A DNA stretch of 64,000 nt from Podarcis melisellensis (Eukaryota): the NCBI GenBank assembly GCA_964234715.1, contig OZ174290.1; one strand, written 5' to 3'. Of this stretch, positions 4,323 to 51,894 are shown in pieces (the first letter of the stretch is position 1; every line of letters begins with the position of its first letter). The translations under genes and the position numbers were made by a program. Below the pieces are notes generated by a model that had not been told where the DNA came from, made no database searches, and saw nothing but the letters and a program-made list of their open reading frames with translations.

Positions 4323-4397
4323 GTTATCCAAATTTTGTCGCGACCTATGGCCGAGGATACCCTGGATTTGCCCCCAGTTACAGTTATCAGTTCCCAG
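4323..4397 (+). CDS. MSI2: MSI2 constitutive exon (human exon 10 equivalent), 75 nt, phase 1-1: (G)[24 protein letters not shown](G)
   Basis: CT-rich tract then ttcaAG acceptor (4321-4322); donor CAG|GTACGT at 4398. Peptide matches human MSI2 [26 protein letters not shown] with one substitution. Confidence 0.97.
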
Positions 4398-4797
4398 GTA
4401 CGTGAAATTTTAATATGTATAATTTAATCGAGCAAAAGAAAAGAAAATTCCAAACACATCCTATTAGGGAACTTACTCATGAGCAAAGCATGCATAGGAT
4501 TGCACTGCAAGTCCATAATTCAACTGAGACAACAACAGCAGCAAAGCCTCTAAATGGAGGACCTTTTGGTAGTGCTCAAGGTGTCATTTTCTTTCTGGTT
4601 TACTAAAATAAATGGCGGGGGGGGGGGAGAGAACCTGATTTCATTTTGGGTTTTAATTGGTACTGGTTATTTGTAAACAGAATTCCTTTGAAACAGCACA
4701 CAATTAGGTATTTTACTTCCCTTTTTGTAAGGCACGTCTTTCTCCCCGCCTGTCCCCCCAAAGTTGAGTTTGTTTGTAGTGCTATGCAGAAGAGTCT

Positions 4798-4800
<3 letters not shown>

Positions 4801-4855
<55 letters not shown>
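4801..4855. repeat. (TC)27 microsatellite
   Basis: Direct reading. Confidence 0.97.
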
Positions 4856-4859
<4 letters not shown>

Positions 4860-4947
4860 TTCTCTTGCACTCTGCACAGAGATGAGGCTCCACCTAATAC
4901 CTTCCCTCTTGTTTGTTTCTCTTCCCCTCTTCTTCCATTTTGTGCAG

Positions 4948-5037
4948 CTGTCAGATCTGCTGCTTTTAGCAATCTCTGTTGAGTCCGTGTTTAATACCTC
5001 CAGTCGTCACTTTGAGAACTCCTGAGGTTTTGAAATG
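4948..5037 (+). other. MSI2: Candidate stop-containing (poison) cassette exon of MSI2, 90 nt; would add AVRSAAFSNLC*
   Basis: Long pyrimidine tract 4901-4941 ending tgtgcAG (4946-4947); donor ATG|GTAGGC at 5038; in-frame TGA at 4980-4982 after phase-1 splicing from exon 10. No transcript evidence. Confidence 0.4.
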
Positions 5038-8000: not shown

Positions 8001-8158
8001 CAAGTCCCTTGGAAGTAAATTGGGGATATTCAGAAACAGCAACTGCTAGGATACAATAAAGTTGGGTTTGATTGGATGCGGCTTTCTTTAACCATTCTCA
8101 CTGTGTGTCAGAAGTATTCATTACAGTGCAGGCCCTTCGTCAGTTCCTGTTAACAGTA

Positions 8159-11009: not shown

Positions 11010-11050
11010 ACTATTTGCCGATTTCACAAGACATAATTTTTATCAACTAG
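11010..11050 (+). CDS. MSI2: MSI2 alternative terminal coding exon: (D)YLPISQDIIFIN* (short isoform)
   Basis: Acceptor ttcttatttcactttgcAG (11008-11009); phase-1 reading gives DYLPISQDIIFIN-TAG, nearly identical to the recalled C-terminus DYLPVSQDIIFIN of the short human MSI2 isoform. Confidence 0.9.
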
Positions 11051-12955
11051 TTCTTAAAGATGCATAACAAATTAATCGGGGTTTACTGCAGTGCTAATGA
11101 GAGAGAGTGAGAGAGAGTGAGAGAGAGAAAGCCTGGGTGGTCTGTACATTAATATCAGTATCCACTGGAAAAAAATATGCTGCTCTTACTGACTCCTTTG
11201 GCTGACTGGACTATATTTTTTAAAAAAGAAAATCTCCATATCTTTTTCCTGTTTTTTGATTTTCCCTTCTTTTTGTTCCCCCACCCCCTGCTTTGTATGA
11301 GTTTGTTTTTTTTAATACCCACATGGAATGTAACTCACATCAGGGTTGGCTGCGGGTGAAGGCATTACAATTTCTCACAAACTTTTAGGGACAATTCTCT
11401 TGTTTTCACTGAGATGTGCTGTTTGACCCACCTTAAAAAGTCCGGAAGGAGATTTTGGCTGGCATTTATTGCTATACATCAGCTCTGAGACGCAACAGCA
11501 GCTATCCCTTGTTGGCGTTCAGAATGGTGGTTGCTACAGCTATTGGACAAATGAGGAGGGTGAATCTGATTAAAATTAATCTGGTTGGTGGAGGTCACTT
11601 TTGGTTTGGAATGGATCTTTCAGTAGCCATTATGCTGTGGCCTTCTCCACACCACCACAAAAGCCATAAACACTGGTTCAAGTAACTGACCAAGAGCTCT
11701 GCTTAGAGAACTCAGTTGTGCTCCCTCTTAAATGTGAAGCTGCCTTGCCAATCAACTCATGGACCTTGGTGTTCATTGTACGACTGACACCGAGTTGCTG
11801 CCGAAAGCAGAATCCCTGATGCCAGGTCATGTTGTGGTATCATCATGACACGTTTCCTGGTTAGCAGCAGCCCAGCCCTTCCCAGGCTTAATTGAGTGAA
11901 CTGCTGGCAGCCAATTTGGCAGACTAATCAGAGTTGTTGGGATGAGGCCTGGTTGGTCCTTGAGGTGGGTGGTCCATCTGTGCAAGGGGCTTACCACCTT
12001 CAGACATTAGGTTGGGGCTGCCGTGATAGAATCCTTTGCGCAGGGACATTCCCTGCACATAGAAACCTGGAGGTCTCAGTTCCAACCTAGCCTTCCTCCT
12101 GACATGCTAGCTCTCTGTGTGCAGAGACCGAAGTAGCATTCTGTTTTGTGAGCCACTGCCTGCAGTTCAGACAGCTGGGCCTCACTGTCAGTGCTCTGTA
12201 GCTTTGAGACTTCCATGGAAATTGGCTTTCCAGCTGTATGACAAGTCTGGGCACCCTCCTGTATTGATAATGCAACAAAGAAAACAGGCCCTTCTACTTA
12301 TTTCCTAAGTTTGTGAGAAATTGGCTGCATGCTTACAGTAGGACTGAGATGCATTTTAAATATATGTTTAATTCACTTGTTTAAAATGTCAAAGTCACTG
12401 CAATCGGAGTTGTGCTGTTCATTTAATAATGGTGCTTGATGTAATAACTGTTTAGTTTTCCTCTTTTTTATCCTTTTTGCAAGCTATGGCTTTTGAAACC
12501 TGTATGGCTTTTTTAATTATTATTTTGCGGGGGAGGGTTTTTTGCTATTATTTGCTTTGCATTTGTGATCTTGTCCTAGAATGCATGATTTTGCAGACAT
12601 TTAACTGTTGTATGATTTTTTTTTTCTTAATTCCTTTGGTTTCTTTTGTAAGTAGTTCATCTGTGCTTTTCTTTGCTTTTCTTTTTTGGTAAAAAAAAAT
12701 CCTTGTAGAAAAGGTAGAAAAAGTGATAATAAATTGTTACAATAGACAAGCTGTGTTTTTGCTCTCTTAGCTTGCACTTTCAATTCGGTTGTACCAAATA
12801 ACCAGTACCAATAACAATGTAATGAAAAAATACATAAGTTAGTAAAAAGCATGGCATCTCTTTTCAACATGCGTCAAAGTTTTGCTGCAGATTAAATGTT
12901 GCATTTTAGTTCAGTATATTTAAATGAAAGTATAAAAGCAATGGTTACTGGTGGG
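11051..12955 (+). promoter_or_regulatory. MSI2: Putative alternative 3'UTR of the short MSI2 isoform with poly(A) signals
   Basis: Follows the TAG at 11048-11050; no recognisable transposon; very U-rich at 12350-12930; AATAAA 12728-12733 and TATAAA 12931-12936 followed by a GU/U-rich tract. End position is inferred. Confidence 0.55.
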
Positions 12956-16439: not shown

Positions 16440-17570
16440 TTTATTTAAATTTGTAAGCCTTCCCTTCATTGTACCAGGACAGGTTACAGCAGAACATCAA
16501 ACAGTATAAACTTAAAACAGCCACTCAAGCCATCCTTAGTACAGCATACAATACTAGTGTAGCAGGTGAGCACACAAATAGCAGCTGGCCACATTGCCTA
16601 ACCTCCTCCAAAAGCCTGGATAAAAAAAAGATTCCTCTTTAACAGGCACCGAAACTCAAGTAGGCTCAATACCAGAATCCTCTCTAAATGGTATTTCTTG
16701 TGCCAACATGCCATGCACTTCCCCTTATGGTGGAACCACGAGAAGAACCTCTCAATCTGATCTCGGTGCATGAGCAGGTTGACAGAAAGGTGATCCTTCA
16801 GGAATTTGGGTTTTAAGGTAAAAGGCTTTATTATATGGCAAGGTTAACCTGTTGAATTAGTTTAGAGAAGAAAAGACTGAGAGGGGATATGATAGCCGCC
16901 TTTAGATCTTTTAAGGGTTGTCATGTGAACGATGGAGCAAGCTACTCCAGAGGGTAGGACCTGATGCAATGGGTTCAAATTACAACAAAGGAGATTCTGG
17001 CTAAACACTAGGAAGAACTTTCTGATGTTAAGACCTGTTCAGCAGTAGAATGGACTACCTACGAAGGACTCAGCTTCCTTGGAGGTTTTTAAGCAGAGAA
17101 TGGATGGCTATCTGTCAGGAATTCTTTAGCTGTGATTGCAGGGGTTTGGACGACCCTTGGGGTTCCTTCCAAGTCTCTGAATTGGGATCAGAAGCATATA
17201 GACAAGTAGTGCAGGTTCTTCAGGACTTACATTCTATGGTCCTGCCTATTGGTAGTAGTCAGCAGTCTTACAGCTGCTTTCTGGACTAGTTAGCAGCTTC
17301 TGGACAATCTTGAAGGGTAGCCTTACATAGAGCACATTACAGTCCTCCAGTCAGGAGGCTAGTAGAGTGGGGATTACCATCCAGGAACAGCCAAAGCTAA
17401 TAGTAGGCACTCCTTGCACAAAGGTCACTCAGGCTTCCAGTTAAAAGAGTTGGCTCCAGGAGCACCTCTAGACTACAAATCTGTTCTTTCAAGGCAGGTA
17501 CAACTCTATCCAGAACATACAATCTATTTAATTCCTGGACCGGAGAACTACCAATCCACATCTGTTATGC
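16440..17570 (-). mobile_element. Decayed L2 LINE fragment interrupted by a CR1 insertion
   Basis: L2-type 3' end at 16440 and L2 ORF2-like sequence (cagctgctttctggac...agcacattacagt..tccag) resuming after 17182. Confidence 0.65.
16859..17182 (+). mobile_element. CR1 LINE 3' fragment nested in L2
   Basis: gagaagaaaagactgagaggggatatgata...aggaagaactttctga...ggaggtttttaagcagag...ccttccaa; tgaatt on both sides as a possible TSD. Confidence 0.85.
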
Positions 17571-17623
17571 AGGATAGATTAGGCTAGTCTTCATCTTCCT
17601 GTCTCCATGCAGTGTGGGCATTA

Positions 17624-17737
17624 TAGGAATTCAGGAAGCTATCTTCTAGCAAGTCAGATCATTGGTCCATCCAGCTCAGTATTGCCTACACTGACCGGCA
17701 GCAGCTCAGGTTTCAGATAGAAGATCTTCCCCAGCCC
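17624..17737 (-). mobile_element. Squamate tRNA-SINE 3' fragment
   Basis: Reverse complement of the ctgccagtcagtgtag...gatggaccaatg.tctgact family. Confidence 0.7.
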
Positions 17738-20369: not shown

Positions 20370-22329
20370 GTGTAGAGGCTATTAGCAGGTGTGTGGCTCC
20401 TTTGAATCTGAAGCAGACTCAGAATTTTAAAGGGATGCATTTATATACATTTTTGGAATTTATTTCTAAATTTCTGTTTTTTAATCTGGCCCACTCCAAA
20501 CGGGGCCAGGAAGTCCACCCCTCATTTCTTCTCACAGTTCCCTTAGAGGAACCCAGAGGTGCAGCTGCTGGGAGACTTTCCATGAACTATGATTCACAGA
20601 AGCCAAGCAGCACAAATGGAAGCACAGGTGCATGGCGAGTGGAAAGAGGGTTGTCCCGCTGGAGGACTGGGGTCAAATGAATCGCATGCCCAGCCTGTTT
20701 TGCTTCCAAGGCATCTTGGTACCTCCGAGTGTTTGCTGTTGCCTGGTGAGCATTGCAAGTTGGGCAAAATCTATCAGCAAAGTGGCAGTGACCCTTTGCT
20801 AATTGGCAACCTCTTATGGGGAACCATGAAAAGCTGGTCAGGGAAATGGCCCAAAATGTGTGGTGGTGGTGGTTTTAGGCTGCAAATATCTGACATAGGC
20901 AACTGCGAGCCAGTGGGCTAGTAATGTTAATGGCAGCAGCAGATAACTTTTTTATCCAGCTGTTCACCACAAAACAATGTTAAATAATATTTAGGCTACC
21001 TGTACTATTTATGCTCGGGCTGTTGTGCATTGATTTCCCCACCCGTTAGGAATTTTCACGTTTTTGGCTACAGTTCTTCATAGTCTGAACCTCCACATGC
21101 TTCCCAATTGTTTACTCCTTCAAATCTGGAAAACCTGGGCAACTGCTTTTCAGTCCCCATGGGCCATCTACTAGTGAGAGGGTGAGAGGGTAAGAGAAAA
21201 GGATGTGGAGGCTGGGAAGAAAACCCCCCAACCCAACCAGACCCCAGGGGATTCTTGCTTGCACGCTCCCTTCTTTTGAGGCCTCTGTTCTTGTCAGCCC
21301 CTGTGCCTGGAATACCAGAGTAGGCTCTCTAATGATGACCTCATTATGCGTGCCACTACTGAGCCCAAAATGCACTAATTTCCTGACCCGGTGAAATATA
21401 TTTTAATAAGCTTGATCTAGAGCAGCGTTTAAAGACAAAGGGAAACACTTAACGTGGCTGTCAAAATAAAGCACTCTTGGGCAGATGTTAAAAATGTTAA
21501 TAGGATTAATCCATCAGAAGCACCCAGGAGAGCCTGCCCTGTTTGTATACCTCTATTTGCCATTTTAAAGCACAGGGTTAAACTATTTCTTTGGAGAGAG
21601 AAAGAGAGGGGGAAATGGATTAAATTTTGAGGTCGTGCAATTTTTCTTAAATTAGTTTATAGCTTGCTGTGCTGCCCAGTAATGCCTATATTTGATTCTA
21701 TGGATTTTTAGTGCTTACCGTGGGATCTTCAATCAAACCCAGTTACCCAGGCAAGTTCATTACACTTAAAAGTTTTTTAAACCACCTCTTCCTCCCCCAC
21801 CCCCGAACTTTTTAGTAGAATTCTGTCTCTCTTGATACAACGATGGACATCTCTGTTGTGCTTTTAATAATCTCTGTAAAACATTCCTGGCTTTGTGTAC
21901 TTTTGTTTCAATGGGAAATGGAACAAATACTCACCAGGGCACTAGGAAGATTTGCGCTGACAGCATCCTTTTTTGGGTTGTGACCAAAGTGAGATTTGCC
22001 ATGGGCTGCATCTGTGACATACAGCTGCAGAACGCAACAAGAAGTTCCATCGTGTCACTCATGGTATTTAACATTTCATGAAATGGCTGGATGAGATCAT
22101 CCAGACGTGCAATGTCTGGAGTGCGGCGTCATCTGTAGATCAGTCATACCCAATTCTAACTCTCCCTTTCATCTGACCCTGGGAAGACAGTGTGAATTCT
22201 AAATAGGGGCCTTAAGTCAGCCGTGAATTAGATGAGTGTGAGCAAAATTTGAAAAGACACATGTATTGTTAGCTGGGCCGATGCTGGAGATATGCACCTT
22301 TATTGTACAGGGTTGTACTTCCCCTAAAG

Positions 22330-28582: not shown

Positions 28583-28606
28583 CCCTATTACCATATTTAA
28601 ATGCAA
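28583..28606 (+). CDS. MSI2: MSI2 24-nt in-frame microexon: YQFP-ALLPYLNA-SFPAAAY
   Basis: ttttttcctccaacAG acceptor (28581-28582), donor CAA|GTATGT at 28607; phase 1-1, no stop; peptide recalled from predicted vertebrate MSI2 isoforms. Confidence 0.8.
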
Positions 28607-29402
28607 GTATGTCTCTCTTAATTCATATTTTGCAGTAGTTTAGAGACACTTTAGCCTCTCACTTCTGTTCAGCTTTTCCCTGTTAGCAATACATGTAGCT
28701 ACGGTGATAGAACTAGAGCTAGCAGGCTTGTAGTTGGCTGAGTTCTTTGGATCTCTTTTTCTCTCTCTTATCTTTTCCTCTGCTTTCCGAATCCTCTTTT
28801 TATTTTCTTTGCCTCTGGCCTCCATATGATTGTCTTCATAATGAGGAACTATGAGCAGTGTAATCACTGGCCAAGAGTGCCTCCTGTCTTTTGTCATCAC
28901 AACCAAAATTGGCAATACAAATTAGAGTTCTCCAAAGCTCACCTCAAATTAACTCTGAAATTACTTGAGTTCTTTGGGAAAAAATGGAAGGAACTTGGGT
29001 GATTTTTCTGAGCCACTCCGAGGGCTCAGAGAAATTATTGGCCTTTCTGCCTTCTCCTTCCTTTTAAGGTCTCCCCACACGATCCCAGTTTCATGTTCTT
29101 AATTTTGAAGTAATGGTAGCGGCAGTGAAAGCAGACCAACATGTTAGCTAACAACCTACCAGCCCATGGGGAACTGTGACAGATGTAGTTCTCTGAAGAG
29201 CCACTGCCCCCATTTAAGATCAAATATGGGTGGGTATATGGATTCTGTAGGGGCAAGGCAACTACATCTCCTATGCTGTCTTCTTCCCCAGAAGGCTGCT
29301 CCGACTGGATGACAGAAGTAATGAGAGAGGGTGAAAACCCTCTCCTCTCTTCACTCCATGTACTTGCAACTTTTGCTGCTGCTGCTGCCGCTGCTACAAC
29401 TT

Positions 29403-30987: not shown

Positions 30988-31047
30988 GTTTTCCGGCAGC
31001 AGCCTACGGACCAGTAGCAGCGGCAGTGGCAGCAGCAAGAGGATCAG
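30988..31047 (+). CDS. MSI2: MSI2 constitutive exon (human exon 11 equivalent), 60 nt: (G)[19 protein letters not shown](G)
   Basis: Pyrimidine tract 30950-30980, ggccAG acceptor 30986-30987, donor CAG|GTAGGG at 31048; matches human [22 protein letters not shown] minus one Ala. Confidence 0.96.
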
Positions 31048-31104
31048 GTAGGGGGGGCCGTGGAAGAGGCGGCTACATGGCATACCTTCAGAATGCAGGG
31101 CCAG
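31048..31104 (+). CDS. MSI2: Alternative 5' splice-site extension of exon 11, 57 nt: GRGGRGRGGYMAYLQNAGP
   Basis: Open frame continues to a second donor CAG|GTAAAA at 31105, preserving phase 1; resembles a segment recalled from teleost msi2 isoforms. Confidence 0.75.
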
Positions 31105-31766
31105 GTAAAAGCTCTGTCGGTATTCTATGTGGCTGCAGCTGTCCATCCCTTTCTCTGACTTTTCTCACAGTGATCTGGGGGTGCGGGGAAACCCACCAAA
31201 CAAAACCAAATACTACAAGCAGAGCCCATAAGACTCAGAGCAGAGCATAGGCTGTAAGACCAGATGGTCTTTGCGGATCCACCCAGTACAAAGTACACCC
31301 TCCTGGGAGCTGTCAACTGGACCTTTTATGAAAATGTCAAGGACAACAAAAGTTTTCATTTCTCCACAGTTTGCACTGGGCTAACAACGCAATCACACTC
31401 ACACCCACATATACACACACCTGTTAATTCCTCAACTTGTTAGGGCAGCAACCTGCATCTCCAACTTTAATGTTTGGGACGAATGCAGTGAGTAAGTTAC
31501 TCTCAGTGGTGGCCCAATCCAAAGCAAGAAACCACATATCCATTAATATCAACAAGGATTCCAAATTAGGGTGTTTAGGAATGCTCTATCAAACTTTGAT
31601 CTATGGAGGGTACCATGATCAACCTCCTACAAATCAGCTTAGCTATTTAGTAAGTTCCGTTTATTCATCTGTCTCGTGAGAAAAGGGAACCATAGTGTGT
31701 GTCCCTGCCCTTTGAAATGGTGGCACTCCAGATCTGGCCAATGCGAACAGGTCTAGTATTATACAG

Positions 31767-31902: not shown

Positions 31903-34900
31903 TTATCCAGAACAGGGTGAGCAGTGCAGCTTGCCTTCTCTCATGCCATTTTTAGGTGGCAAGTCTGGTCAGCTGGACCTGGATGCTAGAAAAATAGTTC
32001 TCCCCAGTTACTTCGTAGGTCAGACATCTCACTAAAATATGGTTGGGGTGCTTAAGCATAGTTCTGGTGTGGTGTTTGAATTGACAAAACCATAGTTTGC
32101 AATTGGCCAACAAACCAGAATCTGATACAGTGACGGAAGTTGATTTACAAACTGGATTTTGTGCTAACTCTGGTTTGGTGTGATATTGATAGCCATTGTT
32201 TGACCTCCAGAAGCTGAACCAAAAGGGAGATGAGAGTGATTTGATGGACTTAGGAAGCTGAGTGGCAGAATACAACAGCAGACAAGCTGTTCTAAACTGT
32301 GGTCTGCTAGTATATTTGGAAGCTCATACCAAGGTTTTGGTTCTAAACTAGGGTTAGCACAAACAGCGACATGGCATGATGTCTAAATTGCACCATAGTT
32401 TGAAGTCAGTTGCAGTTTTAGGAGTGCAACCTAAATCAGGGGTGTTCCACCTTGGCATAAATTGGAATGGCTCTCTGAAGAGTATAACCTTTTGCAGACA
32501 TCTTTAAAAATACTTTTTACTCTTTGAGCTTGGATATTGTTCCATCTTTTGTTACCTGCTGCAAACTCTGGCTCCAGTTTCATGAGAAATGTGTGCCCAC
32601 CTATAAAAAGCTCCACTTCCTTCCACTCTGTTCTCCAGTGCCCCTCCTGCTAGGGGAAGTAGTTAAGCCGCTATTATATCCTAGCATTCCAGTTTAGGGG
32701 AAAGTGAATTATCCCTTTGGCATAATTGAGTGAAATCATGAGTGGGCTGCTAAGACTTACCAGTGCCTCTCTTTTGCTGTATTTGCTTGTTGGCTGAGAC
32801 CTTGGTTGTGCCTGAAGCCATTCTGAACCCTAAATACAAAGCAAGGACAAAGGGTAGATTGCTGCTTTCAGTGGGTTTTATTGCTCCCCAATCTATCTTG
32901 CTTGCTCATCTCTGTGTACTGTCTTGTGCGTTTATCCGGCCGTTTGTTCTTGCTAATATTAACTGGGTTATTGCACCGGGGGTGGCGGTGGGGGCAATTG
33001 GAGACAACATGATTGGGCCCAAATTCCCCAGCCAGATTGTACACGTTGAGACATGTAGCAAACAATTTGGAGGTAACTGTTTTATTCAGCTCTCTCATGA
33101 TGAAGCTTGTTCTTTGACATGAAAATTTCTACACTCATTAGCTATAGGCCTCTTCAAACCGACACAAAACAAAAGGTCCCAGACGTGGGGGAAGTGCTGT
33201 CAAGCAGCAACACACACACCGCAATAGACTTTGGCGGGGGTGGGGGGGAGACTGAATTATTTAGGCTCCAAAGTGGGATGTTTGGAGAACTCCGTTCCAT
33301 GCAAACTGGCACTGCTTGCGGGGCTACAAAGGATTCATCCGTAGCAGTTTATCGTTGTATGTAGGGAAAGTCCAAGGGTTGGTTTGCTCAAAGATAGCAA
33401 AGGGATTTTTTTTTCCTTTCCTTTTTAAAATCCTTTTCTGAAAAGGATTCCATTTATTATTTGAGGAAGAATGGACAGATTCCCTCGTCCCTTACCTGCA
33501 CTTTGGGGCCATTTGGTTCCAGTTTAATTTTAAATAGAGATGATCATTTTTTCCCACAGAAAGGACAAGGGTTCTGCCAGATTAAGTCTGATCTTCACTG
33601 TTGTCCTGTTTTAATCAGAGTGTCCCATCACAGCTGAACCTGAGTGTCAGCCAATTTCTCTGCTTGATATCATTTGGTTGGTTTTTTTGTTTTTGTTTTT
33701 TGTTTTAATTATTGTTTTGGATTTTTTTTTCTTTTTTAAAGAACAGATTAACTTTGTGATACCAAAAAAAGAAAAAAGAAAAGAAAATTCTAACCCTGAA
33801 ATTAACACCAACATATATGGCAAGTTTAAAGAGCAGTATGGTGCCCTGTATATATTTCTTGTGTGTTTTTGAAAAAAATCTCTGCACTTGCAGATCTACC
33901 CTAGTGCTCCCTCAAGGAAACTGTCTGCTGATGTGCAGAAGTGGTTTCCATTGACAAAGAAGCCCCTTCGGCTCAGGGACAGCATTCCATTTGCAGCCAT
34001 TACCATCAAAGGGAATAGCATTGATAGTGAAGTGTATTTAAGAGCAATGGAGTCAGCTTCATGTTAATGGCACTCAGGCCTGATTCATTACAGAGGGGGA
34101 ATGACAAATGGAAATAATTGGCTTCAATATTTTGATGATTAGAGCGATATCACTTGGGGCACACTTGCAAGATGACTTAAGTGACTACTAAAGCGAAGAC
34201 ACACCTGTGTCTTAAGATGTACGAATGTTAAATGTCTAAACCACAAGACATCAGTTCAGTGTATATTTATTGATCTCTCACTGCTGAACAGATTTGGGGG
34301 GGGGGGAGGTCTGCACCCCTGCGGAAGTTGGTAGTTGGGCCCTGTGATTGCAGCACTGCCGTACACACAATTATTATTATTTATTAAAATAGTATACTAC
34401 CCTAGACTCTTAGGTCTCAGGGTGGTTCATAACATACGAATTTGTGTGTTCATGGATCTTTAAACCACACTTCATAAGGCTGGCTGTTGGATGTAGAGAA
34501 TTCTGTCCTTACTCCCCACTCTGGCCTCTTGTGCATCCCGTAAGGGTACTCTACTAATTACAATCCACAGGCAGATGACCCCTCCCTGGAGCAAGGGCCT
34601 ATGCTTTTAATTTTGGTGGGAAAACATTTATTTTATTTTTATTTTTTCTTTACTAAATTGCTATACTACCTTTCATCCGAGGATCACAGGGTGATATTAG
34701 CCTGGGAGTTGGGGCTGTATGTTTCTTCGTTCATATTTATAGAAACATTTATGTACCTCCTTTCAGCCCTGAAAGGTCCCCCAAGGCAGGTTACAACAGT
34801 GAAAACACTGGAGTAATTACAACTGGAGAGCATTGAGAGAAGCCAAGAGAAAGCAAATGAAACCAGCCTCCCAGCAGGCCACAACACGAACTAAAACTTT

Positions 34901-36107: not shown

Positions 36108-36146
36108 CTATAACCAATCTCATAACATGAGCTACTGACCTTGATG
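36108..36146 (+). other. MSI2: Candidate 39-nt stop-containing microexon of MSI2; would add AITNLIT*
   Basis: Acceptor ttccttactgtcctttatacttgccAG (36106-36107) and consensus donor ATG|GTGAGT at 36147; in-frame TGA 36128-36130. No transcript evidence. Confidence 0.5.
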
Positions 36147-38566
36147 GTGAGTGTGAGCAGTTATGTTCTTGTTGTTTTCTCTCTTGCTTGGTTGGGGCTG
36201 CTGTGAGAGAGGGTGTCTCTGAGGCATTCTTTCCGGCCTCTCTTACACTGGGACGTGCACTCCTCTCAAACACTCTTCTGAGCACGCTCAGCAGGAAGGT
36301 TTGTCCACACCTATTAATCCTCTCTCTGTGTCCAGCTTCTTGTTAGTAGCAGCTGGTTGCATGTTTTTTTTGCTTGTTCAGATGAAACGGTTTAAGAAAC
36401 GACTCATATCCAACTCTTGAAAAATGTCTCTCTCTCTCTCTTTCTCTCTCTTTTTAAAAATATATATTTATTTTTGTTTATTTTAGTACACTTTCTCTCT
36501 TTTGGTTTTTTTAAAAATTACTTTCCCTTACTTAATAAAACAAAACACCTGTTGTTCGTGAAACATCTCACATCTCCCCTTGCCTGTTCTTAGAGTGTTA
36601 TGTATCTGTGGGACTGAACTAAATGCATGCACTTGTCGTAGTTGTAACCGGTAGCAGTAGACGTAGTTGTAGAACATGCATTGTTGAGTTGATATTATAG
36701 GTTCTTGTCGGCTCGAAAGAGCATGGCAGTTGCAGTGTAGCCGCGGTTTGATTGGAAGTGTAGGTCAACCTGTGTAGAGCAATGCTGAACACCTGGATGC
36801 ATAGTACAGTGATCATTATCTCCCAAACTTGGGCCTACCAAATTCAATCAGGACACTTTATTATTCTGGAAGGGCCCTTGGTGGTCTGGCGGGGGGTAGT
36901 CAATTGACCGTTGTAAAAGAAAAAAAGCGACCCTTCTTTTAATTCTAAATACACTTACTTGTGAGTAGTTCCCACTTAAGCCAATGGGAGTTACTCATAT
37001 GTAAGTGCTTTATGATTTGAGGCCAAGTTTAATTTCAGCAAGCATTGTACACTCAAGGCTTCCTACAGAACATTAACCTTCTTAATATTCTGCATTAGCG
37101 CTCCGAATCCTTTTTGGAGGCCTTAAACCAGGCCGGCAGAGCAGGAAAGCCGTCCATTGGAGACCTAAGTCCTGGAGAGTATGTACAATGACTAACCGTC
37201 AGAGTATGCAGAGGCACAAGGGAATTGGTTTTAGATCCTAAAGTGCAAATTTGGCTACGCCACAAACTTGCCACTGTTTGTATTCATTCCCACATTGCCA
37301 AGTTTTAGGATAATGTTTTGGTTTTTCCTCCCCGCAAGCACTACTGAACATTTCATGAACAGTCAATATTAGGTGTCCCAAGGCAAGTCTCATCATCTTC
37401 CTCATCAAACCAGCAAAATCGTCTTTTGCTTCTTCTCCCTCCCTGCATTTCTTTCTTTCTTTCTTTTTTGCACCTAGTTTTCTGTACTCAGCTTCTCAAA
37501 ATTGTTTTCCAAATGAGCAGCAGTGGGTAGGGTTGGCAGCTGGTAATTCAAGTCCTGAATGCCACATTACATTTGGTTTGTGGCTGCTACTGTTTTGTCA
37601 GCACATATCCTGCTGAGAGTAGATTGCGTACATCACCGTTCCCCTCCCACCCAGTTCGACATCTTGCCTGAAGATGCACTGCTGGTTTGGAGTGTGTTCA
37701 ATTTACTGAGCATGCTCAGTGTAGACGGTTAAATCCAAGCAGTTAACTCAGCATATGTTACTGGAAGAAATAAGGTACGCTAAATATTGTTTCATTGTGC
37801 AGTTAAGAATATTGTTCTAACAGATTGTAAAACACACAGACTCCCCCCCCTCCAAATGTTGTTGACCCAGATGACGAGTACATACCCTTCATTGATTGAA
37901 GGTGCCCCCCTTCCCTTATTGCGCCAGTATAGTTGTAAATCTTACGCACTCGAGGTATGATTATATAACTTGTCTCTTAAGCAGCAAATCTACTACAAGG
38001 AATGGGGCCCACTGTTAAATGTGTGATGCAGGAAAATTAGATGGGTAACGTATCTAAAAGTTAGCAAAGCGGAAAATTGCATGGGAAGTAGCAATCCACG
38101 TCGTACACTTAATTCCAGTACTTTCAAATATTTAGTCTTGTCATTAAGCACCTCTCTTGTTTGCAAATTGCAGTAATAAAAAAAGAAAAAAGATGGGAGC
38201 AACAGTTGGTTTGTGTACACAGAATGATGATGGGGAAATTTGTAGCAACATGTTGGAACAGTTTGATAGCCACTTGTGTTTTCTTCACAGTCCAAGGGAT
38301 AGACCTTGAAGCAAGCCCTAGATGCTTAAATGTATATATATTACTGTCTAAAAAGTGTATAACATTTAATCCAAGTCATGTAGTCAGAATGTTAACAAGC
38401 ACCACCTGGGGGATAGCAAGTGGTTTTCGAATGTCTTTCTCCTCTGAAAGACCCAATAATTACAACTGGAGCCCTAGACAGCTGATGCAATAGAAAGAGA
38501 AAATCTTAATGCATCTTAATGCACCTACTAATTTTCACTCTATAGTGTGGTAAAAAGAAGATGCAT

Positions 38567-38644
38567 CTATAAATGCTTCTATTTGCCTAGCCCTATAAAT
38601 GCTTCTATTTGCCTAGCCCTATAAATGCTTCTATTTGCCTAGCC
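38567..38644. repeat. Perfect tandem repeat, 3 x 26 bp (ctataaatgcttctatttgcctagcc)
   Basis: Units at 38567-38592, 38593-38618, 38619-38644. Confidence 0.95.
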
Positions 38645-39774: not shown

Positions 39775-39950
39775 GTGTGGCTCTTTAGTAGAACACATAC
39801 TCTGGATGCAGAAAGTCCCAGGTTAAATCCCAGGTAAGACTGGGAAAAGATGCTCCCCCTCAGTCTGAAACCACGGAGAACCTCTACCAATCAGCGTATA
39901 TAGTCCTGAACTAGATAGGCCAATGTGTTGGCGTAAGGCACCTTTCTCTA
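39775..39950 (+). mobile_element. Squamate tRNA-derived SINE (decayed)
   Basis: Same layout as 22601-22765. Confidence 0.7.
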
Positions 39951-41720
39951 TTCTGTGCTTGAAAAAGGGGAGTTTGCTTTGGCTAATTTCATTGAGGATT
40001 GCTGCTTGTTTGAGAATTCTTTAAACGCTGCAGGGAAACTGTCCATGGATCCCATTCCTCAATCAGCCAATCAACCTTCTTTTTAAAAGGGTTGCAGCAA
40101 GGCATTGTGAGCCTGGGTGACACATCAGTAGAGAAAAATAAATTGCAACATGTGCCATCACTAGGCCCCTGAAGGTTCCCTTCCCTTAAGTAGGTAGAGT
40201 GAGAGAAAGAATTCTAGTGATGCTGGTTTGCCCCTCCCTGTTATACGACAATTACTTTCCTGCAAGTAATGCTTTCCTGCATTATTTTTCAAAAAGAACT
40301 TAAAGCAGAATGATTTCCATTCAGCTTCTGGAGGTGCTCACTGGAGGAAAACCCCTACCATTATAGAAGTTGGATACCTGTGAGCCTATTCTGGGATGTC
40401 CACCTGCTCCCCATCCATTAATTTTCTTCATTCGAGGGCAGAATATTCTTTCTTAGTGAAGCACTCACTCTCCTGCACACTGAGGAGTTCTGTGAATGCT
40501 GCAGCCAAGTTCTGACTCTGGCTGCAGTAATTTTACTTGATTCTATTGTGGGTAAAATGTATTAGCTTTTAATCACTTATTTTGTAATAGAAAATCCAGG
40601 GCACTTGATAAATCATCTCCAGCGCAATTAGTGACCAGCTCAGGAGAGCAGGCTTAAGTACGGTATAAGTTAATCTGTAATGAATGTAGTCACTAACTTT
40701 TAATGGTCTTCTCAATCAGTGGAATTATTTTCAATGGGCAAACACTCTTCCACGGAACCCGCTCTGACTTGCAGGGTGCCTCACTTCACTCCTGTGATCC
40801 AAACAGACTAATCATGTGTTCAGAGGAAAGGGGGCTCTAAAAGGTTCTTTCGCTCCATGAATGAATTTTACTCTACTCTTGGCAAGCCCTGGAACAGGCA
40901 CTTCATGTAACTCAATTTTTCCCTGATGGAACAAAGCTGAAGAGTGAGGTCTTCTCTTTCTCTTTCCTGCAATCATTATCCATTTTCCATTATAATAGTC
41001 CCAGGAGGACTCTGGCAACAATCTAAAAGCTATTCAGGCACTTCTTCAGATATAGGCAGAAGCACAATGATGGAGAGCCAGGGTAGACCAAGTGTTGGAT
41101 CCATACCTCAAAAGACTTGGGTTCAAATCCCTCAGGACATTGGGGGATCAACTAAGGTAATGTTTGAACTCATGCAAGTTAAAACTTAGCAGGCCACACT
41201 TTATAGATTGGAAACCACTAGGGAACCACAGCATAGCTGCCCTGAGTCTTTCTGAGAGAGTGTCAGATACAAATAACTAGGTTTGTGAGATGGCAAACTG
41301 GTGTCTCTCAGTCTCAATTTCCTTAGGCTAAGAATAGGGATGCCTTACCTCAAAGAGATGCTAGAAGAATGAAAAAGATGAAGATTGGAAGACTCCTTGC
41401 ACATCCCAACAGTTTTGCATGCACAGTTATTAGTTTAACATGCCTTTTCTTTGCAGAACGCAATCCTCTGTGCATAAATGTTGCCCATGTGAATATGAGT
41501 GCGAGCTCACCTTTTTCCTGCTATTTTTCATATTAGCTCAGCAATGCAAGAGCTATATATTAGAGCCACAAATAATCTCCCCTCCCCTTCCGATGCAGAG
41601 TCATCATTTGTCACCTTTCTGCTTATTTCTTCCAGGACCATTGATAGTTCCTGGGTCCAAACAGTGCCTTCACACATTCAGGTTTTATTTATTGTCCGCA
41701 GCAAAGAGTAGCACCCTATT

Positions 41721-42087: not shown

Positions 42088-43087
42088 AACCATAAAAATA
42101 TTGGGGAAACTTCAGGATCTTTTTTTAAAAAAAATACTGTTTTCAAGTTGTTGCCCTGTTTTACTATGTAAACCCATTTTAGAACTTTTTGCTGAAAAGC
42201 TGTATATCTAAACACCCCTAATAAATAATACCTAGTGGACCACAGTGCATTTCAACAAGTGACTTTTATCTTAAAACCATGCCTGGACAATGACCATTCT
42301 GACTTAAATGTGAGGTTAAGTCCTGGTTTTATTTTAATTTGCCTCTTTTTCATATCTGTAGCTGCACAAAAGGCCTCAATTTAAAATTAACAGGAACAAT
42401 AGCCTATTAATGTGTTACAGTGGGAGGCCAGAGTTTCAGTTGCCATAGCAATGGAGTTCGGCTCATTTGTTTTGTAGATGAATAATTACTACACAATTAG
42501 AGTAGGCTAAAAATAAAGGGTCCCTTTCTTCCCAGTCACTCATTAATATTAATAAAAGGCCTGTCCAGGCTGTGGTAAACAATTAATGCAAATCTGGCCA
42601 CCAGTGGTAAAAAGGTAGCAGTAAAAGACTCATTGCTAAAACGAGAGTGAAAAAGTAAGAGAGAATTATTCCGTTCCTTTGGATAAAAAAGGCAAATGAT
42701 TGGGAAATTATTCTATATTGACCCAGGATGAGTTGTATTGCTTATAATGGAATGGCCGCTAGGCTTCTGAATAGAGCTGGACAACAGATATATGAAGTTT
42801 TCAGAGTTAGTTCATATGGAGACAGGTGGCCCTTGAAGTATTTCAGTCCTGAGAAATAGAGAATATAGAAAGCACTGTTGCCATGAAGGGCATTTTACAT
42901 AGCAATATAAAAAAAGGCAGCAACCTGCCCTTAGCCACCCTTTCAGCAGCTTCCTCAGTCTTTGCTCTTCTGTTCTCTGTCCACCATCCTTGTGGCTGTG
43001 ACTTCGCATAAAGAACATCCTCTGTGTTGCAGGTTCCAAAATTTCATCATGATGAGCAACAACAGAATGTCCAGAGCCTCTCTTAGT

Positions 43088-43309: not shown

Positions 43310-46300
43310 CTCTTAGTGAAACTAACATAGACACTTTGTCTTCAACACAGCAAGCAAAGCAGGCAAAGAAAGATGAAGTATTTGGGTTTCAGATGAGGGA
43401 TCATATAGAGAGTAATGGCAAACAGATACCTGGCAGCAGTAATCAACCATGTGAAGGTCTAGAGCACATCAACTTAGCTTTCCTCTGCTGCCTTCTAACC
43501 CAGTGAAGACACTGACTGGGGAGATATTCCTTGGAAGCACCTTGGGCCTCACCTGGCACCTTCTTCCAGAAATCCACTTCACACTTTTTACCATGCTGTA
43601 TTCCACTGCATGCCACCACCAGCTCATTCCTCGCTTTATTAACTTGTGTTAAAGATCATGTAACCTCTTTGTTCTGCCCACTGTTTTCAGTGACTCAGTC
43701 ATGATCAGATAAGACATTCAAAAGATAAGTATTCTGAATATTCCTTTCTCCTCTTTATTCATTGGACGAGCTCCTTGGAGTCCAGACCGCTCTCAAATGC
43801 AGGTGTGAGATAAGGAGCACATGCTATATATTGTGGCTTCGTGAGTAGCTATTTTTAGTAATAAAAATTCACCATGATAAGAATATGACCAGCAAAACAC
43901 CAGCTTCCATTGCTGGAGGTGAAGAAGCTACACAGCAAAATGCTTTATGGTATAGTGGCATCAATCGTCATGCTGGCTAATGGCAGAAAAACAAAAAAGT
44001 GAAAATGAATAGCTCAGAAGTGGAACAGGTAATCAGTGGTTGAAGTTGCTGTCAAACATTGACTTCTTCCTTCTATTCCAAGAAACAAAATGGCTGACCA
44101 GTTGATTGGCATGGTCAACTATTTTGACAGGTTGCCTTGGAATCCCCAGCCTCTATGATTGTTGTCTTCTCTCTCCCCACCCCCCACTCAATAATAATAA
44201 TAATATCTGGACGAGATGTCAAAATATGGTGCAGGTTTTTCCGAGGGGATGGTTATCTTCTGCCCTCCAAAACTATGTAACAAAAAGAGAGAAAAATGTA
44301 GCACAGCATTTGAAAGGTCGACATTTGTTTGTTGTTAAGGATCTAATTAGAAGCATGAGAGGGAGCAGACTGGCTGCTTGCTTGGCTAATTAGTGACATG
44401 CACGAAGACCACTTTGAACTTCAAGGACACAGAGCTATTAGCACTTACATCAAAAATGGATTAAACTTCTGTGCTTTTGTAATGATTAAAGATGAGCCCC
44501 TCAAGTGGAAACTCTTTTGTCAAATGCTGCAAGAAGAACTGGCGCCCTGATTGCCGTTTCTCTTGGAGAAGCTTTGCAAGGCCTCGCGTGTGATGGCACT
44601 GGCCCCATCTGAAAATGACACTGTGTTTAATTCGCAATATGGGAGATTTTGATTAGGCTATAAATATTGATTGCTCATGAAACATCACAGCTAAGATGAG
44701 AAATGTATTTATTTGCCTCCATGAGCGAGTGCAGGATTTTATTTTGTGAGGGGTTTTTTTTATATACTTTGCTGTGTGTCAAGTATTTTGTTAATCTGTT
44801 CCCAATCACTTGTCGACAATCCTTTATCAGTGTGCAAGTTTAAACTCAGCTAAAACAGCTATTAAGGATGCAGTTGTTTCTAATATACTTATGGCTTTGG
44901 ACAGGTGGCTAACTTAGACGTCAAAGTGCCCCAGCCTGTCGCCATTTTAGTGGCTTTAAAGAAGTTGTCTAAATGCCTCATCTGTCTGACACGGCAAAAG
45001 AGCAATTCCCCCACACCCTCTCTACACTACAGTTGCTATGTCCCTAGCAGAACTTTGGGAAAGAGGAAATCCTTCCTATCTTACGACAAACCATCTTGAG
45101 GATAATACTGATGCAAGTTGAGAGGTGCACATCTTTCCTGCTCTCCTGAGTTTCATTCTGGCCTCTCCGTAGGCCACAACAGACAAGGCTTGTCAACCTG
45201 GAACAGGAGTATTTTTGGCCATTTCTACAATTCAGCACCATGTGATCTGTGCAGAACTCTTTGATGCACCATCTTCATATAGAAACCAGTCTCAAGAGAC
45301 AGCTCTTTTCTTAATCATATTCTCAACCTATCAGCAATATTTGCAAACTGCGCTTCACTGTATGTATTCTGGATTCAGTCTTTGCCAATGGTCCTCCATT
45401 CTGCTGTCCCATGTATCCTCTTGTTGATGCTGCTCTTAAGCTACAAATGCAACTGGTAACCCCACCACCCTTTCTGACCACAATATGCAGCAATAGATTT
45501 ATGGCATTTCTCCTGCATCCACTGACCCTTTTGAATTGTATGGATTTCAGTGGGATTTGATCTTGCTTAGCTGTCGCTGGCTTGTGTCCATATTCCACAA
45601 AGCAGGATGCTAAAGCCTGGAGATTGCAGCTCTTTTTATACATGCCATGGGGATTTAGCTTCTACAAATGTATCCGAATATCTTTTGAGCTATATCATGA
45701 ACCCAGCTGCACAATGGCTCTTTGAGCTGCATTTAATCTCCCTTGTGATTATGTTACCCAGTTATGTTACATGAAGCAATCAATATGTTCCAAAGCTTGC
45801 AGAGAGGAATGTTCTAACCTTTTGAACAGACTCTAAAATCCAGGTGGTCTTCATTTTGTACAGGGACACCAAGACTATTTCCTATTTAGAGCAACATCAT
45901 GGAAGTGACACCAGTAGCATAGTTAGATAATTTTAGGCTTACTAACCTTATACACGGACACACCTCTTAGATCTTAGGTTTAGTCATGTTGCATTTTGTA
46001 GCCCTCTTGCTCGTTTTGCTGATTGGGGCTCTGGTCATCTGCTCCAAAGTCCAATCCTGAGACCACCATCATGTAGCAGATGAGAGATTTAAGACTAGAA
46101 TATTTACAGGCCCTTCCAGCATGATGGATGTTTGCTTTTAGGCAGTGGGTGGGCAACCTGCAACCAAACCAGCCTAATGCATGTTGCCCTCCATCTCATC
46201 TCATGGAGCCCTTGGTCTAATGTCATGCTGGTGGGGAAAGTTGAAAGTTGAAAGAGGAGGTTTGGAGGAGGAAGAACCAGGGGAGAAAGCAGAGACAGAG

Positions 46301-47358: not shown

Positions 47359-47411
47359 GAAGCTAAGCAGGCCTGGCTCTCATTAGGGCCTGGATGGGAG
47401 ACTGACTGGGA
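47359..47411 (+). mobile_element. 5S rRNA-derived SINE head or 5S pseudogene fragment
   Basis: gaagctaagcagg.ctgg...ttag..cctggatgggagact..ctggga matches the 5S internal control region, degenerate. Confidence 0.7.
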
Positions 47412-48404
47412 CCTCAACATAAATCTCATTGAGTTCTATTGAAGAAAGACAGATTCAGATAAAAAAGAAAATCAGTCAGATCATCTTTGGGTAAAGTCTG
47501 ACAGTGTGGTATTATCTCCCCTGGGCAGGCGAGTCTTGTCTGTCTGTCTGTCTGTCTGTCTTGTATCCCACCTTAAAATGTAAGAAATGGTGCCTGCATG
47601 ATGTCTTAGAATAAGGCTTTCCATTGAGTAGTGTGTAGAAACATCTGGGGGTGTGCAGCTAGAATGTTTGCAGCAGGTGTTAGGGGAAATTATGACACAT
47701 TCTTCCTGAGTGTGCAACAAGGAAACCTTTGGTAAAGTTATTGCGGGCTTGCTTGGCAAAGCAACTCAGTCGCACTGGTCAGTCATGACCACTTCTGAGG
47801 AACTAGAGATTTAAGCAGCCCATCACTCCCTGAACATTATCCATGCTGGTTGGGGCTCATGGGAGTTGAAGTCCAGCAACATCTGGAGAGCCACAGAATC
47901 TTTGGTATCACCTGGCTTCCAGGACCAGGAAGATGCCGGTTTGCAGAGTTGTAGCTTGGCTCAAACTGCCTGCATTTCCCTCTTCCAGCCAGTCGGGGCT
48001 AGGTACTGGCCACAGGGCTCATGGCGATACCTGACCCTTGTCAATCACAGAAGGCACAATGGGACATTTTTTGCCAAAGTATTTTGGCGTTTCACACTTG
48101 TCTGTTTCTACTTGTTTACAAGCATTTCTAAACCACTTAATATTTAAAATCTCTGAACCATGTAGAAAATTGCAAACATAAAAACAGTGAAACTGTATAA
48201 TAAAAACAGATAAAACCAATTCTAGTCAAAACAGGGTCCAGTCATGTGTCAGGGAAACTCTAGGCAAGAGGAAGTGGCTGAAGCAACGTCTGGCAGAGGA
48301 AAGAGCAATCCATAAGGCAGAGGCAACAGTGGGGAACTATGATAGTCCGTATCGTATGGTGCCACAAGCCATTTCCCTCCAAATTGTCTATAAGTGTCCT
48401 TACA

Positions 48405-48628
48405 AGTCTCCATAGCAGCAGTCTTTCAGGTAACGTGGCCTAGGGTTGTCCAAGGCTTTATATGTTAATAGCAAGACTTTGAACATGACACAGACTCTAG
48501 CTGGCAGCCAGTCCTGGTCCCTCAGCAGAGGTGGAACATGTGTGCGTCCCGGTGCTCCAGTCAACAACCTGGCAGCTGCATTCTGCACTGCCTGTAGCTT
48601 CTCTGCCAATCTCGAGGGAAGCCCCACA
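48405..48628 (-). mobile_element. L2 LINE ORF2 fragment
   Basis: Minus ORF GLPSRLAEKLQAVQNAAARLLTG...WLP...FKVLLLTYKAL is the typical L2 ORF2 C-terminus. Confidence 0.9.
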
Positions 48629-50559
48629 CAGGGAGCATGTCCTATTGTTGGGTCCTTCCAGCCTTCCAGTTCTGAAGCATGCTTTGGACCCGTTTAGCTC
48701 CAACGTTGTACGTTGGACCTCTACTAGCAACCCAAATTAAGCAACGTTGAAGAACAGCCGCTGGTTTTTGAAGTATAAAAGTTGGAGACGGTAACGGCAG
48801 GTTTCCAGTTGGCTTGTATGCCCAGCGCTACATGTGCTGAGTGTCGGCGCTCCTTGTTCGACAGCGTCTCCCTGATGTACACATTACTACACGCAGCTTC
48901 TGCCTCCACTTTCATCTGTATCGGCAGCATTAAATATTATTATATCATTTACTCTCTCGAGCAGGAAAATGATGTTTGGCAGCTTGTTCTATGAATTTTT
49001 CATAAAGATAAAAAGCGGCCTAATCTTGTGAGCTTTAACTCTCAGTAGCAGTAATGGCTTTGATTTAAAGTGTTTTGTCTTAATGATAGTTATATTGAAA
49101 ATTTCCTGCTGCTTTCAAGCACGCACGGTTATTATCATAAACACTGATGGTGCAAACGGCTGCCAAATTTGCGTGTGGCTGCTTATGGCAAGAGAGGAGA
49201 GAGAAAGAGAGACAGGGAGCTCGTCGACAGGTTGCTGTCAGTGAGACCTTTCAGTCTGAGAGCATTTTGAGTCTTCCTGAAGTTTTGCTTTGACCTCCAA
49301 AAGTGACTTTTGGGCTTCTCTTCACTTCTCAGCCCTGTGGTCCACAGCCAGGCAAGGATAGCAAGATGAAGCAGAATCTCAGGCAGTGTTTGTACAGCTG
49401 TTCTTCTGGAAAGTACCCTTAATAAAGGAGCGTTTACACATGCTGCCATCATTCTGCGCTAAAGTCGGAACACACAGTTGTTAAGTGTCCTCTGGAGGGC
49501 CAAGGCCCTCAATAGAGACCAATTATTTACATCCACTTGGGCAAAAATTCCCCACGTTGCACGATCCTGCAGAAAATGGCCTACAAACAGATTTGGGGTC
49601 ACTTCCCAATGGCTGGTGCACTTGGAAAGAGAAAGAGTTGGAAGTCCAGGGCTTGTCTGTCCTGCAAGGAACACCACACCAAGGAGAATTAGTTGGCATG
49701 GAAATTAATTCTGCATAAGTGAGTTCTGCTTTGAATGTCCTTGTGGGAGAAATCACTTCCCCTCCCATTTTTCTCGGTGTGCATTCTTAAGATGTGTGTT
49801 GAGAGAGTCCACATGCATCGTTCTGTCTGGCTTCTGGGAGATCTGCCATACATGTCTTTGGGACCTAAATAGGTAGCTATCTGACCCTTCACAAGTTACA
49901 AAGGCACAAGGCAAGTGCCTGCTTTGCAGCACATATTTAAGAGTACTGGTCAAACCTCAAAAAAGAGATAAACTCAGTAATACAGGTGCTTTGTGCTACG
50001 ATCTAATGAGAAAGAAACTATCACAAAACTCTGTAGAGATTCATGGAAGTTTGGAGCAGAAAAGTAATTTCCTGAGAGTTATTTATTTTTCCCTGTTCAA
50101 TTCTTTCCTGAATTCACCATCTGGAGGCTCTGTTTTCATAATGGAGTGATCTATTTTGGTGATACAGTTGATGCTGAAAGTAATAAATAAATAAATAAAT
50201 AAATAAATCTTACTTTCTGTTTTATTTAAGTTCATCTTTTCTGTCCTGCAAGTTCAGACCTGCTCTTGCCTTTTGCTGGAAGGCAATTATGAATGTGGAA
50301 GAGCAAAAGTCTTCCTGATGCTGGGGGGGGGGCGTTCTTTGTTGTTAGCAGTGGCTTACAACACAGATATTAAAATGTACCTCTAGTCCACTTGGCTTGG
50401 GAGAATAAATGTGTAGGCTGGTTTGTTAAAATGCATGCAGACTTTTTTGCACCAACAAATTTGCTGTCCTTTAAAGGATGCCCATGATGTGAAATAAGAA
50501 CAAGTTTACTATCCCAAATGCCAACCAATTGTGAAGTTCACTCACTGCTTTGGTCAAAC

Positions 50560-50772
50560 TTGGCTACTAGCCATGATGGCTATGCTCTGCCTCCACTATT
50601 TGGAGACAGTATACTTTGGAATACCAGTTGCCGGAAACCACAGGAAGGGAGAGCATTGTTGCACTCAGCTCCTGCTTGCAGGCTCCCCATTGAAGCATCT
50701 GGTGGCCACTGGGAGAACAGGATGCTGAACAAGATGGGCCATTGCCCTGATTGAGCATGGCTCTTAGTTCTT
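50560..50772 (+). mobile_element. CR1-family 3'UTR fragment
   Basis: ggctactagccatgatggcta...ggccactg.gagaacaggatgctg.ac.agatgggcc...ggctctta.gttct. Confidence 0.7.
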
Positions 50773-51717
50773 TTGAGATTCCCTCTGCTTAGCTAGGTTA
50801 AATGTGGAGTAGATTAACTATTTGTGATACTTGCCTATTAATTAATTTTTGTCACTTATACTAATTCTCAGTTTGAAGGTTGTGACGAGGTTTAATAGAA
50901 ATAGAATGAATAGAAAGAAACTTCTGTTTACTTCCTACTGGGACCCAAACCAATTGAAATCTATAAACTGCCTTATTAAAGCCATAGCTTTGTATGATGT
51001 GAGACTCACTCATCTCATCTGGGGCTCTGTGGAGTTCAACTTTTATGGCCAGGGCATTAACAGAAACTCCAAACCTTGCACTATGCAGTACTAAAATGGA
51101 GGTGGGGGGTGGGAGTGATCTTGTAGGATCCAGTACAACAGGAAATCCAGGTAAGATCAAATAAGGAACATTTCTCAATTAATACATATATATACTTTGG
51201 TACAAATAGTTATGCACACGCACGCACACACTTTGTATACATTGCACCTGGTGGTTGGGGATTTTTTTTGCTTTTTATGAGTTTGGGGAAAGGGACCTCA
51301 TGTGGATGAACCCCTGTAGCTTTGCAAGGTTAGGCCCTGTCAGCTTGGTTCGGCTTTTCTCTACACTTCTCAGTATGTATTGCATTGGTTGTCATTTTAA
51401 TCAGTTGGGGCTCTGTGTTTCCATACTTCTGTTCTTGTCCCTGTTTTGGAAAAGAATATATAGTGGTGGGTTTATGTTTTTTTGTTTTTTTACAAAATCC
51501 AGGCTCAATGCCTCTGAACCTATGAGTCTGAGTAAGGACCCTGGAGCGTGTATGATCAAGCTGTGGTCCACTTGCTCCTCAAAATCCTACATACATATAT
51601 ATTTTTGCTCTTGTTTCCGTGATTTGTAACTGTAAAATAATAATAATAAAGTACAATTTAATATTGAAAATAAGAACCAATCCAGTATCCACAATGATAG
51701 AGTCACTGTATCTCCAG

Positions 51718-51894
51718 GGATCCCCGATTACGGTTTCTATTCTCCGCCCGGTGACCAACGGGCTCAATTATCCTACGCGGACTATGGTTCCATGGGGCCT
51801 CGGGTGGCTCAGATGCTTCGTAGCGAGCACCCTGCTTCAGCGAGTAACTCCCCCCTTCACCACCTTCCCAGCCCGGATCAATTTAAAAGCCCAG
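51718..51894 (+). CDS. MSI2: MSI2 177-nt cassette exon: (G)IPDYGFYSPPGDQRAQLSYADYGSMGPRVAQMLRSEHPASASNSPLHHLPSPDQFKSP(G)
   Basis: tctccAG acceptor 51716-51717, donor CAG|GTTTGT at 51895, 59 codons with no stop in phase 1; GC/CpG-rich island in AT-rich intron; similar to a segment recalled from fish msi2. Confidence 0.85.

Follow-up and report, generated by a model that had tools for sequence, protein, structure and literature searches.

A putative poison exon and a candidate Musashi-responsive microexon in the 3' half of the lizard MSI2 gene

A stretch of 64,000 nucleotides from contig OZ174290.1 of the lizard Podarcis melisellensis (assembly GCA_964234715.1), here called the window, carries the 3' half of the MSI2 gene on its + strand, from exon 10 to a 177-nt exon; exon 12 and everything after it lie outside the window. 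Positions are those of the window, and all features are located on the + strand unless indicated otherwise. Most of the alternative pieces of lizard MSI2 are already known or annotated, and one stop-containing exon, at 36108, stands out. The reading favoured here, with some reserve, is that this half of the gene harbours separately controlled splicing events, two of which are plausibly responsive to Musashi (MSI) proteins, and that the exon at 36108 is a poison cassette. An initial annotation of the window had joined six alternative modules into a single circuit, and its claims are taken up where the evidence bears on them.

A stop-containing exon downstream of exon 11

The exon at 36108-36146 is 39 nt long, encodes AITNLIT followed by a stop codon and is predicted to be a poison exon that induces nonsense-mediated decay (NMD). 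Conservation was judged from one locus per lineage, for this exon those of screamer, hamster, bamboo shark and paddlefish, splice sites were scored with a simple matrix, and exon containment was checked against 238 protein models. The acceptor and a GT donor are kept in lizard, screamer, hamster and bamboo shark, with a donor of GTGAGT in all but the shark, where it reads GTGGGT. The length of the exon varies between these species (39, 38, 40 and 36 nt, respectively), and all four carry a stop in the phase-1 frame. A 30-mer at the acceptor, which comprises the branch point region, the pyrimidine tract and the AG, is 87% identical in screamer and hamster, compared with 50-55% in the 200 nt further upstream. 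Conservation is highest behind the donor: the intron segment 36147-36396 (+1 to +250) is 95.6% identical to screamer, 90.0% to hamster and 76.8% to shark, which exceeds the identity of the exon itself. This segment contains the RBFOX motif UGCAUG at 36358. Each of the four species has the motif at +212 to +214, with a further copy at +418 to +478. In the lizard, the second copy (36624) marks the start of a stretch with a UAG cluster (36624-36804), the core of which is conserved in amniotes. The interval from +400 to +750 holds 11-12 UAG in lizard, screamer and hamster, where 3.3-4.8 are expected, and 5 in the shark, where 3.7 are expected; among lizard, bird and hamster, the UAG run matches base for base.

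A poison cassette is typically recognized when splice sites and a flanking sequence are conserved but the reading frame is not, and when each species has a stop; the exon at 36108-36146 looks like a conserved poison exon. Its stop codon lies 16 nt from the exon's own junction and far upstream of later junctions, because every full model continues with more coding exons. Since this distance exceeds 50 nt, NMD is predicted. That the exon is spliced into mRNA appears very probable, and that its inclusion triggers NMD is likely, if a little less firmly so. Conserved poison exons known from splicing regulators (SR proteins, hnRNPs, PTBP, RBFOX2 targets) are likewise small, with conserved splice sites and no conserved frame, and share with the lizard exon a stop in every species, a highly conserved flanking intron and nearby motifs for the host protein. 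They differ from it in that conservation is here concentrated downstream rather than in the exon, and in that NMD is predicted, and autoregulation proposed, for the lizard exon.

Use of 36108 as a last exon is disfavoured, as the AATAAA at 36534 is kept in neither bird nor hamster and the donor is conserved. The conserved block also includes an acceptor-like site at 36318-36340, with a pyrimidine tract and a CAG near 36336, which is shared by bird, hamster and paddlefish but missing from shark; no conserved donor was found for it.

Proposed regulation of the stop exon

According to the proposed mechanism, inclusion of the 39-nt exon after exon 11 (30988-31047; 60 nt to its short donor) would place a stop far upstream of later junctions and thereby direct the transcript to NMD. 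The conserved intron behind the donor probably governs inclusion, through RBFOX at +212 and, in amniotes, also through Musashi at about +430 to +550. If Musashi drives inclusion, the result would be negative feedback on the level of MSI2, which is the least certain step. Activation of the exon by Musashi is conceivable, with the balance tilting slightly against it.

Jeong and Stoilov (2026, PMC13175383) reported that a single Msi1 or Msi2 allele gives normal protein in photoreceptors, from which feedback was inferred and for which no mechanism was named. With its conservation and the likely Musashi sites behind it, the putative poison exon is a specific candidate for this unexplained feedback. 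Should Musashi activate it, a high level of nuclear MSI in photoreceptors would lead to inclusion of the microexon described below and, at the same time, divert part of the mRNA to decay. The full proposal, a poison exon as old as the jawed vertebrates, activated by Musashi via the amniote UAG cluster, providing MSI2 dosage feedback in photoreceptors and so far undescribed, is tentative and rather unlikely. The papers searched, a partial collection, contain no description of a poison exon in a Musashi gene or of splicing autoregulation of MSI2; an NMD isoform may be annotated in GENCODE or VastDB, which, like Ensembl, lay outside the search. Control through the MSI2 3' untranslated region (UTR) is another candidate route for the feedback, because MSI1 crosslinks to the Msi2 3' UTR (PMC9509328). 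MSI2 dosage matters in stem cells and leukaemia, and a natural NMD switch would give a handle on the MSI2 level.

Several observations weigh against a Musashi-activated poison exon. At 430-550 nt from the donor, the UAG cluster is further away than the proximal position described for Musashi, and it is not enriched in the shark. In the paddlefish copy, the donor reads GG instead of GT and the downstream conserved block is nevertheless kept, so that this block has some value without the exon. None of the 238 protein models contains the exon, as is expected for an NMD isoform, and among the rows listed, the exon appears neither with the mouse Musashi-dependent exons nor in the table of NMD exons.

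It is also possible, though less likely than not, that RBFOX or another neuronal factor drives the poison exon, which would amount to cross-regulation lowering MSI2 in neurons rather than to autoregulation. The UGCAUG motifs, with the first copy at nearly the same distance in all four species, fit this explanation, as does the distal and amniote-only position of the UAG enrichment; RBFOX2 is reported to control many RNA-binding proteins via splicing-coupled NMD, and the exon is missing from the mouse Musashi-dependent list as far as its rows are given. However, the base-for-base conservation of the UAG run in lizard, bird and hamster is not accounted for in this way, and RBFOX1-3 are depleted in photoreceptors, the site of the observed MSI feedback. 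Both inputs, RBFOX and Musashi, can moreover coexist.

Alternatively, 36108-36800 might be a conserved non-coding element (a DNA enhancer, an internal promoter or a structured RNA) in which splice-like signals are rarely used. The introns of the window hold many deeply conserved elements that are not exon-like, the paddlefish block is kept without a donor, and the evidence for the exon is confined to its sequence. This explanation is nonetheless improbable: conservation begins exactly at the branch point and pyrimidine tract, dips in the exon and resumes at the donor, and the motifs are strand-specific RNA-binding motifs. The stop exon region matched no Rfam family, and there is no folding signal. 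A fold of the RNA that would draw the UAG cluster close to the donor was rejected as well, with compensatory changes in 2 of the 140 pairs of the consensus fold and single-species folds that disagree (z -0.25 to +1.0).

The photoreceptor microexon

The second plausibly Musashi-responsive event is the inclusion of a 24-nt microexon (28583-28606), which reads ALLPYLNAS. Its length is 24 nt in five species. Lizard, hamster and two birds share the same sequence, from which paddlefish departs at two bases (92% identity). It is also found in models from frog, lungfish, turtle and rat, and both included and skipped models exist. The microexon is followed by a UAG cluster (28636-28733), which is likely a Musashi splicing enhancer. 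With 9 UAG in 98 nt, the cluster is the top 100-nt window of the + strand; cluster significance was judged by 150 Markov simulations, one of which reached a count of 9. The first 200 nt downstream of the microexon contain 8-10 UAG in five species, compared with 1.7-2.8 expected, and the enrichment is kept to paddlefish.

In the mouse, the Msi2 microexon at chr11:88368211-88368235 is located between a 75-nt and a 63-nt exon and is followed by an intron of 1364 nt. Orthology of the mouse and lizard microexons was assigned by exon sizes and spacing. Exon 10 of the lizard (4323-4397; 75 nt, with a phase-1 donor) matches all MSI2 models and has its counterpart in the 75-nt upstream exon of the mouse tables, and the intron after the microexon measures 1403 nt in hamster. 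The percent spliced in (PSI) of the mouse microexon is 0.83-0.87 in controls and 0.29-0.45 in the Msi1/Msi2 double-knockout retina (PMC9509328). It is also photoreceptor-enriched, with a PSI of 0.80-0.85 versus 0.38-0.52 in a photoreceptor comparison (PMC4991804). Musashi activates exons from the proximal downstream intron, and in the proposed first step of the mechanism, photoreceptor MSI1 and MSI2 would bind the UAG cluster 30-130 nt after the microexon and thereby promote its inclusion. Musashi-dependent inclusion is thus supported: the dependence has been shown in mouse, and the UAG cluster as the binding site and the same behaviour in the lizard are inferred.

One point speaks against taking the drop in PSI at face value, as it is partly confounded by the deletion of Msi2 itself in the double-knockout cells. 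In the table of PMC9509328, the 5' junctions of knockout Msi2 mostly skip a 41-nt exon, and total mRNA is down by only 0.53 log2. For these reasons, photoreceptor transcripts are judged to persist in the knockout, which suggests that the drop does not only reflect a change in cell mix.

The 24-nt exon resembles the Musashi-activated photoreceptor microexons of Ttc8 (exon 2A), Cep290 and Cc2d2a (Murphy 2016, PMC4991804; Matalkah 2022, PMC9509328) in that its mouse orthologue is listed in both supplementary tables and a UAG cluster lies downstream. Unlike these, it sits in Msi2 itself. Term searches of the main texts of PMC4991804 and PMC9509328 found no discussion of the Msi2 microexon as autoregulation. 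Its Musashi dependence is already contained in published data, and new here is the conservation of exon and UAG cluster to paddlefish. The microexon would add a positive, photoreceptor-specific self-edit of the MSI2 tail, one that is present in published tables.

Probably separate events rather than one switchboard

The initial annotation had proposed a single switchboard, in which the MSI level chooses among in-frame tails, truncation and two poison exons. Five of its six modules are real or conserved. The three frame-preserving ones (the 24-nt microexon, a 57-nt extension of exon 11 and a 177-nt cassette) were found as described, and of the three terminating ones, the terminal exon at 11010 and the stop exon at 36108 held up. 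The third, a candidate poison exon at 4948, is not conserved. The multi-species alignment that had been proposed as a check shows the microexon and the exon at 36108 to be kept, and the 4948 candidate to be without a match in turkey, screamer and hamster.

The phase shared by all modules is seen but does not point to a circuit. The donors of exons 10 and 11 both fall after the first base of a codon, so any exon spliced to them enters in phase 1; as the phase is fixed by these flanking donors, any frame-keeping module has to be a multiple of three. The figure of up to eight tails proved to be an undercount, as squamate RefSeq models contain 12 module combinations; the higher number results from the inclusion of a 39-nt exon with a GC donor, which had been missed, and of a known 54-nt alternative acceptor of exon 12. 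The expectation that some modules are annotated as predicted isoforms was correct, and RefSeq models carry the extension, the 177-nt exon and the microexon. These isoform models are RefSeq predictions and do not show independent control of the modules.

Two of the three UAG clusters claimed to wire the modules to Musashi are conserved, namely the one behind the microexon and 36638-36804, which has 10 UAG in 167 nt (a count reached in 7/150 simulations). The third, 12450-12910, contains 9 UAG in 461 nt, where about 5.5 are expected and the null maximum is about 14, and is no cluster. Musashi control can be upheld for the microexon, from the mouse tables and its UAG cluster, but not for the extension, the cassette, the terminal exon or the 4948 candidate, none of which shows UAG enrichment (0-4 UAG in the following 200 nt). 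According to published work, Musashi acts on splicing in photoreceptors only, and the microexon is the only Msi2 event among the mouse Musashi-dependent events listed. Moreover, the UAG units persist in bird and hamster although both lack the cassette and hamster carries the extension out of frame. Despite the reality of most modules, the annotated combinations and the two conserved clusters, a single switchboard is therefore very unlikely. Nothing points to Musashi control of the terminal exon, the RG-rich extension, the 177-nt exon or the GC-donor exon, which are ordinary choices between isoforms.

UAG-dense stretches also occur elsewhere in the window. The stretch 17188-17650 has 18 UAG in 460 nt, which is denser than 12450-12910, and adjoins no module. 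Two others, 45830-46000 on the + strand and about 38540-38640 on the - strand, are of similar strength to the clusters of the initial annotation and adjoin no known module. Neither of the + strand stretches has a match in bird or hamster.

Terminal exon 11b and the candidate at 4948

The coding part of the terminal exon (11010-11050) encodes DYLPISQDIIFIN-stop. It is the orthologue of exon 11b of human MSI2 variant 2 (PMC5599597), with which it shares its position and a 13-amino acid tail that differs by a change from V to I at one site; the exon is also present in the turkey protein P0224. Exon 11b is absent in mouse (MacNicol 2017, PMC5599597), and the acceptor AG is lost in hamster, as this remark on mouse would predict. 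Overall, the lizard exon differs little from human variant 2 (PMC5599597), and the lizard copy has a probable, bird-conserved 3' UTR. This putative UTR (11051-12832, with its end inferred) includes a block conserved in birds (12292-12832) and an AATAAA at 12728. The stretch 12450-12910 lies 1.4-1.9 kb downstream of exon 11b and overlaps this block, and is most likely 3' UTR of the exon 11b isoform.

The candidate at 4948-5037 is an AG...GT pair with an in-frame stop, located beside a (CT)n repeat. Its local alignment scores are 21-26 in turkey, screamer and hamster, compared with maxima of 28-31 for shuffled sequences, and 17 acceptors between 4398 and 51717, including its own and those of two real exons, pair equally well, most of them giving a stop or a frameshift. 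One UAG is found in the following 200 nt. The candidate is probably a pseudo-exon rather than an exon. Turtles and lungfish have private exons in the same intron (RefSeq models), and 4948-5037 may be a lineage-specific exon, with nothing in its support. The window's top-scoring AG...GT pair on the simple matrix, 16478-16565 (88 nt, with stops), has no bird or hamster match across it and is probably a pseudo-exon as well.

The extension, the 177-nt cassette and further isoform pieces

The RG-rich extension to the second donor of exon 11 (31048-31104; 57 nt, 19 amino acids) is present in many RefSeq models. Shark and paddlefish have an extension of the same 57 nt, screamer one of 45 nt and hamster one of 55 nt that is out of frame. 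The roughly 40 nt after its donor (31105-31145) hardly differ across species from shark to hamster, also when the extension itself has lost its frame, and a splicing control element is possible there. The 177-nt in-frame exon (51718-51894; 59 amino acids) is ancestral in jawed vertebrates, with 39 matches in fish, sharks, amphibians and reptiles, and is skipped in a Sceloporus model. Extension and cassette agree residue for residue with RefSeq models of Podarcis muralis, including a shorter alanine run in exon 11, and both occur in sharks, bony fish, lungfish, frogs, turtles, lizards and a diverged platypus model. In screamer and hamster (L005 47848-49759, L006 55292-58499), the conserved elements on either side enclose a gap-free stretch that lacks the 177-nt exon. 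Because turtle, lizard and platypus models keep it, this suggests separate losses in birds and therian mammals, with one locus each.

Together, the 19 amino acids of the extension and the 59 of the cassette give 78, which is the offset between the phosphorylation sites S356/S381 of Xenopus and S278/S303 of mouse Msi2 and suggests that the studied Xenopus protein carries both. The lizard pieces match this 78-residue offset and resemble the long non-mammalian MSI2 isoforms (Xenopus; RefSeq fish, sharks, reptiles). Neither piece has an assigned function in the literature examined, and the loci studied in bird and rodent lack the cassette. These remaining modules are of modest interest, as they document the lineage loss of the extension frame and of the 59-amino acid exon.

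The 39-nt in-frame cassette with a GC donor (21712-21750) encodes VLTVGSSIKPSYP and was found only in squamate models (RefSeq models of Podarcis, Lacerta, Zootoca, Pogona, Euleptes and Sceloporus); its splice sites are not kept in birds. Downstream of the window lies the 54-nt alternative acceptor of exon 12, the one that directs human MSI2 to the nucleus (PMC13228403). Models from alligator, frog, lungfish, shark and teleosts (P0206, P0225, P0218, P0170, P0178) have yet another last exon in common, an alternative and conserved one with an end like KFLNGPMFR; it was not found in the window and probably lies downstream of it.

Apart from the exons, the introns contain a number of elements in common with birds (3345-3639, 21301-21511, 25071-25486, 33284-33387, 40542-40741, 42318-42620, 44263-44718, 48910-49203, 53318-53514 and 62277-62438), several of which are also found in hamster, shark or paddlefish. 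Where aligned, these elements are rich in TAAT/ATTA and not exon-like, and they are probably enhancers.

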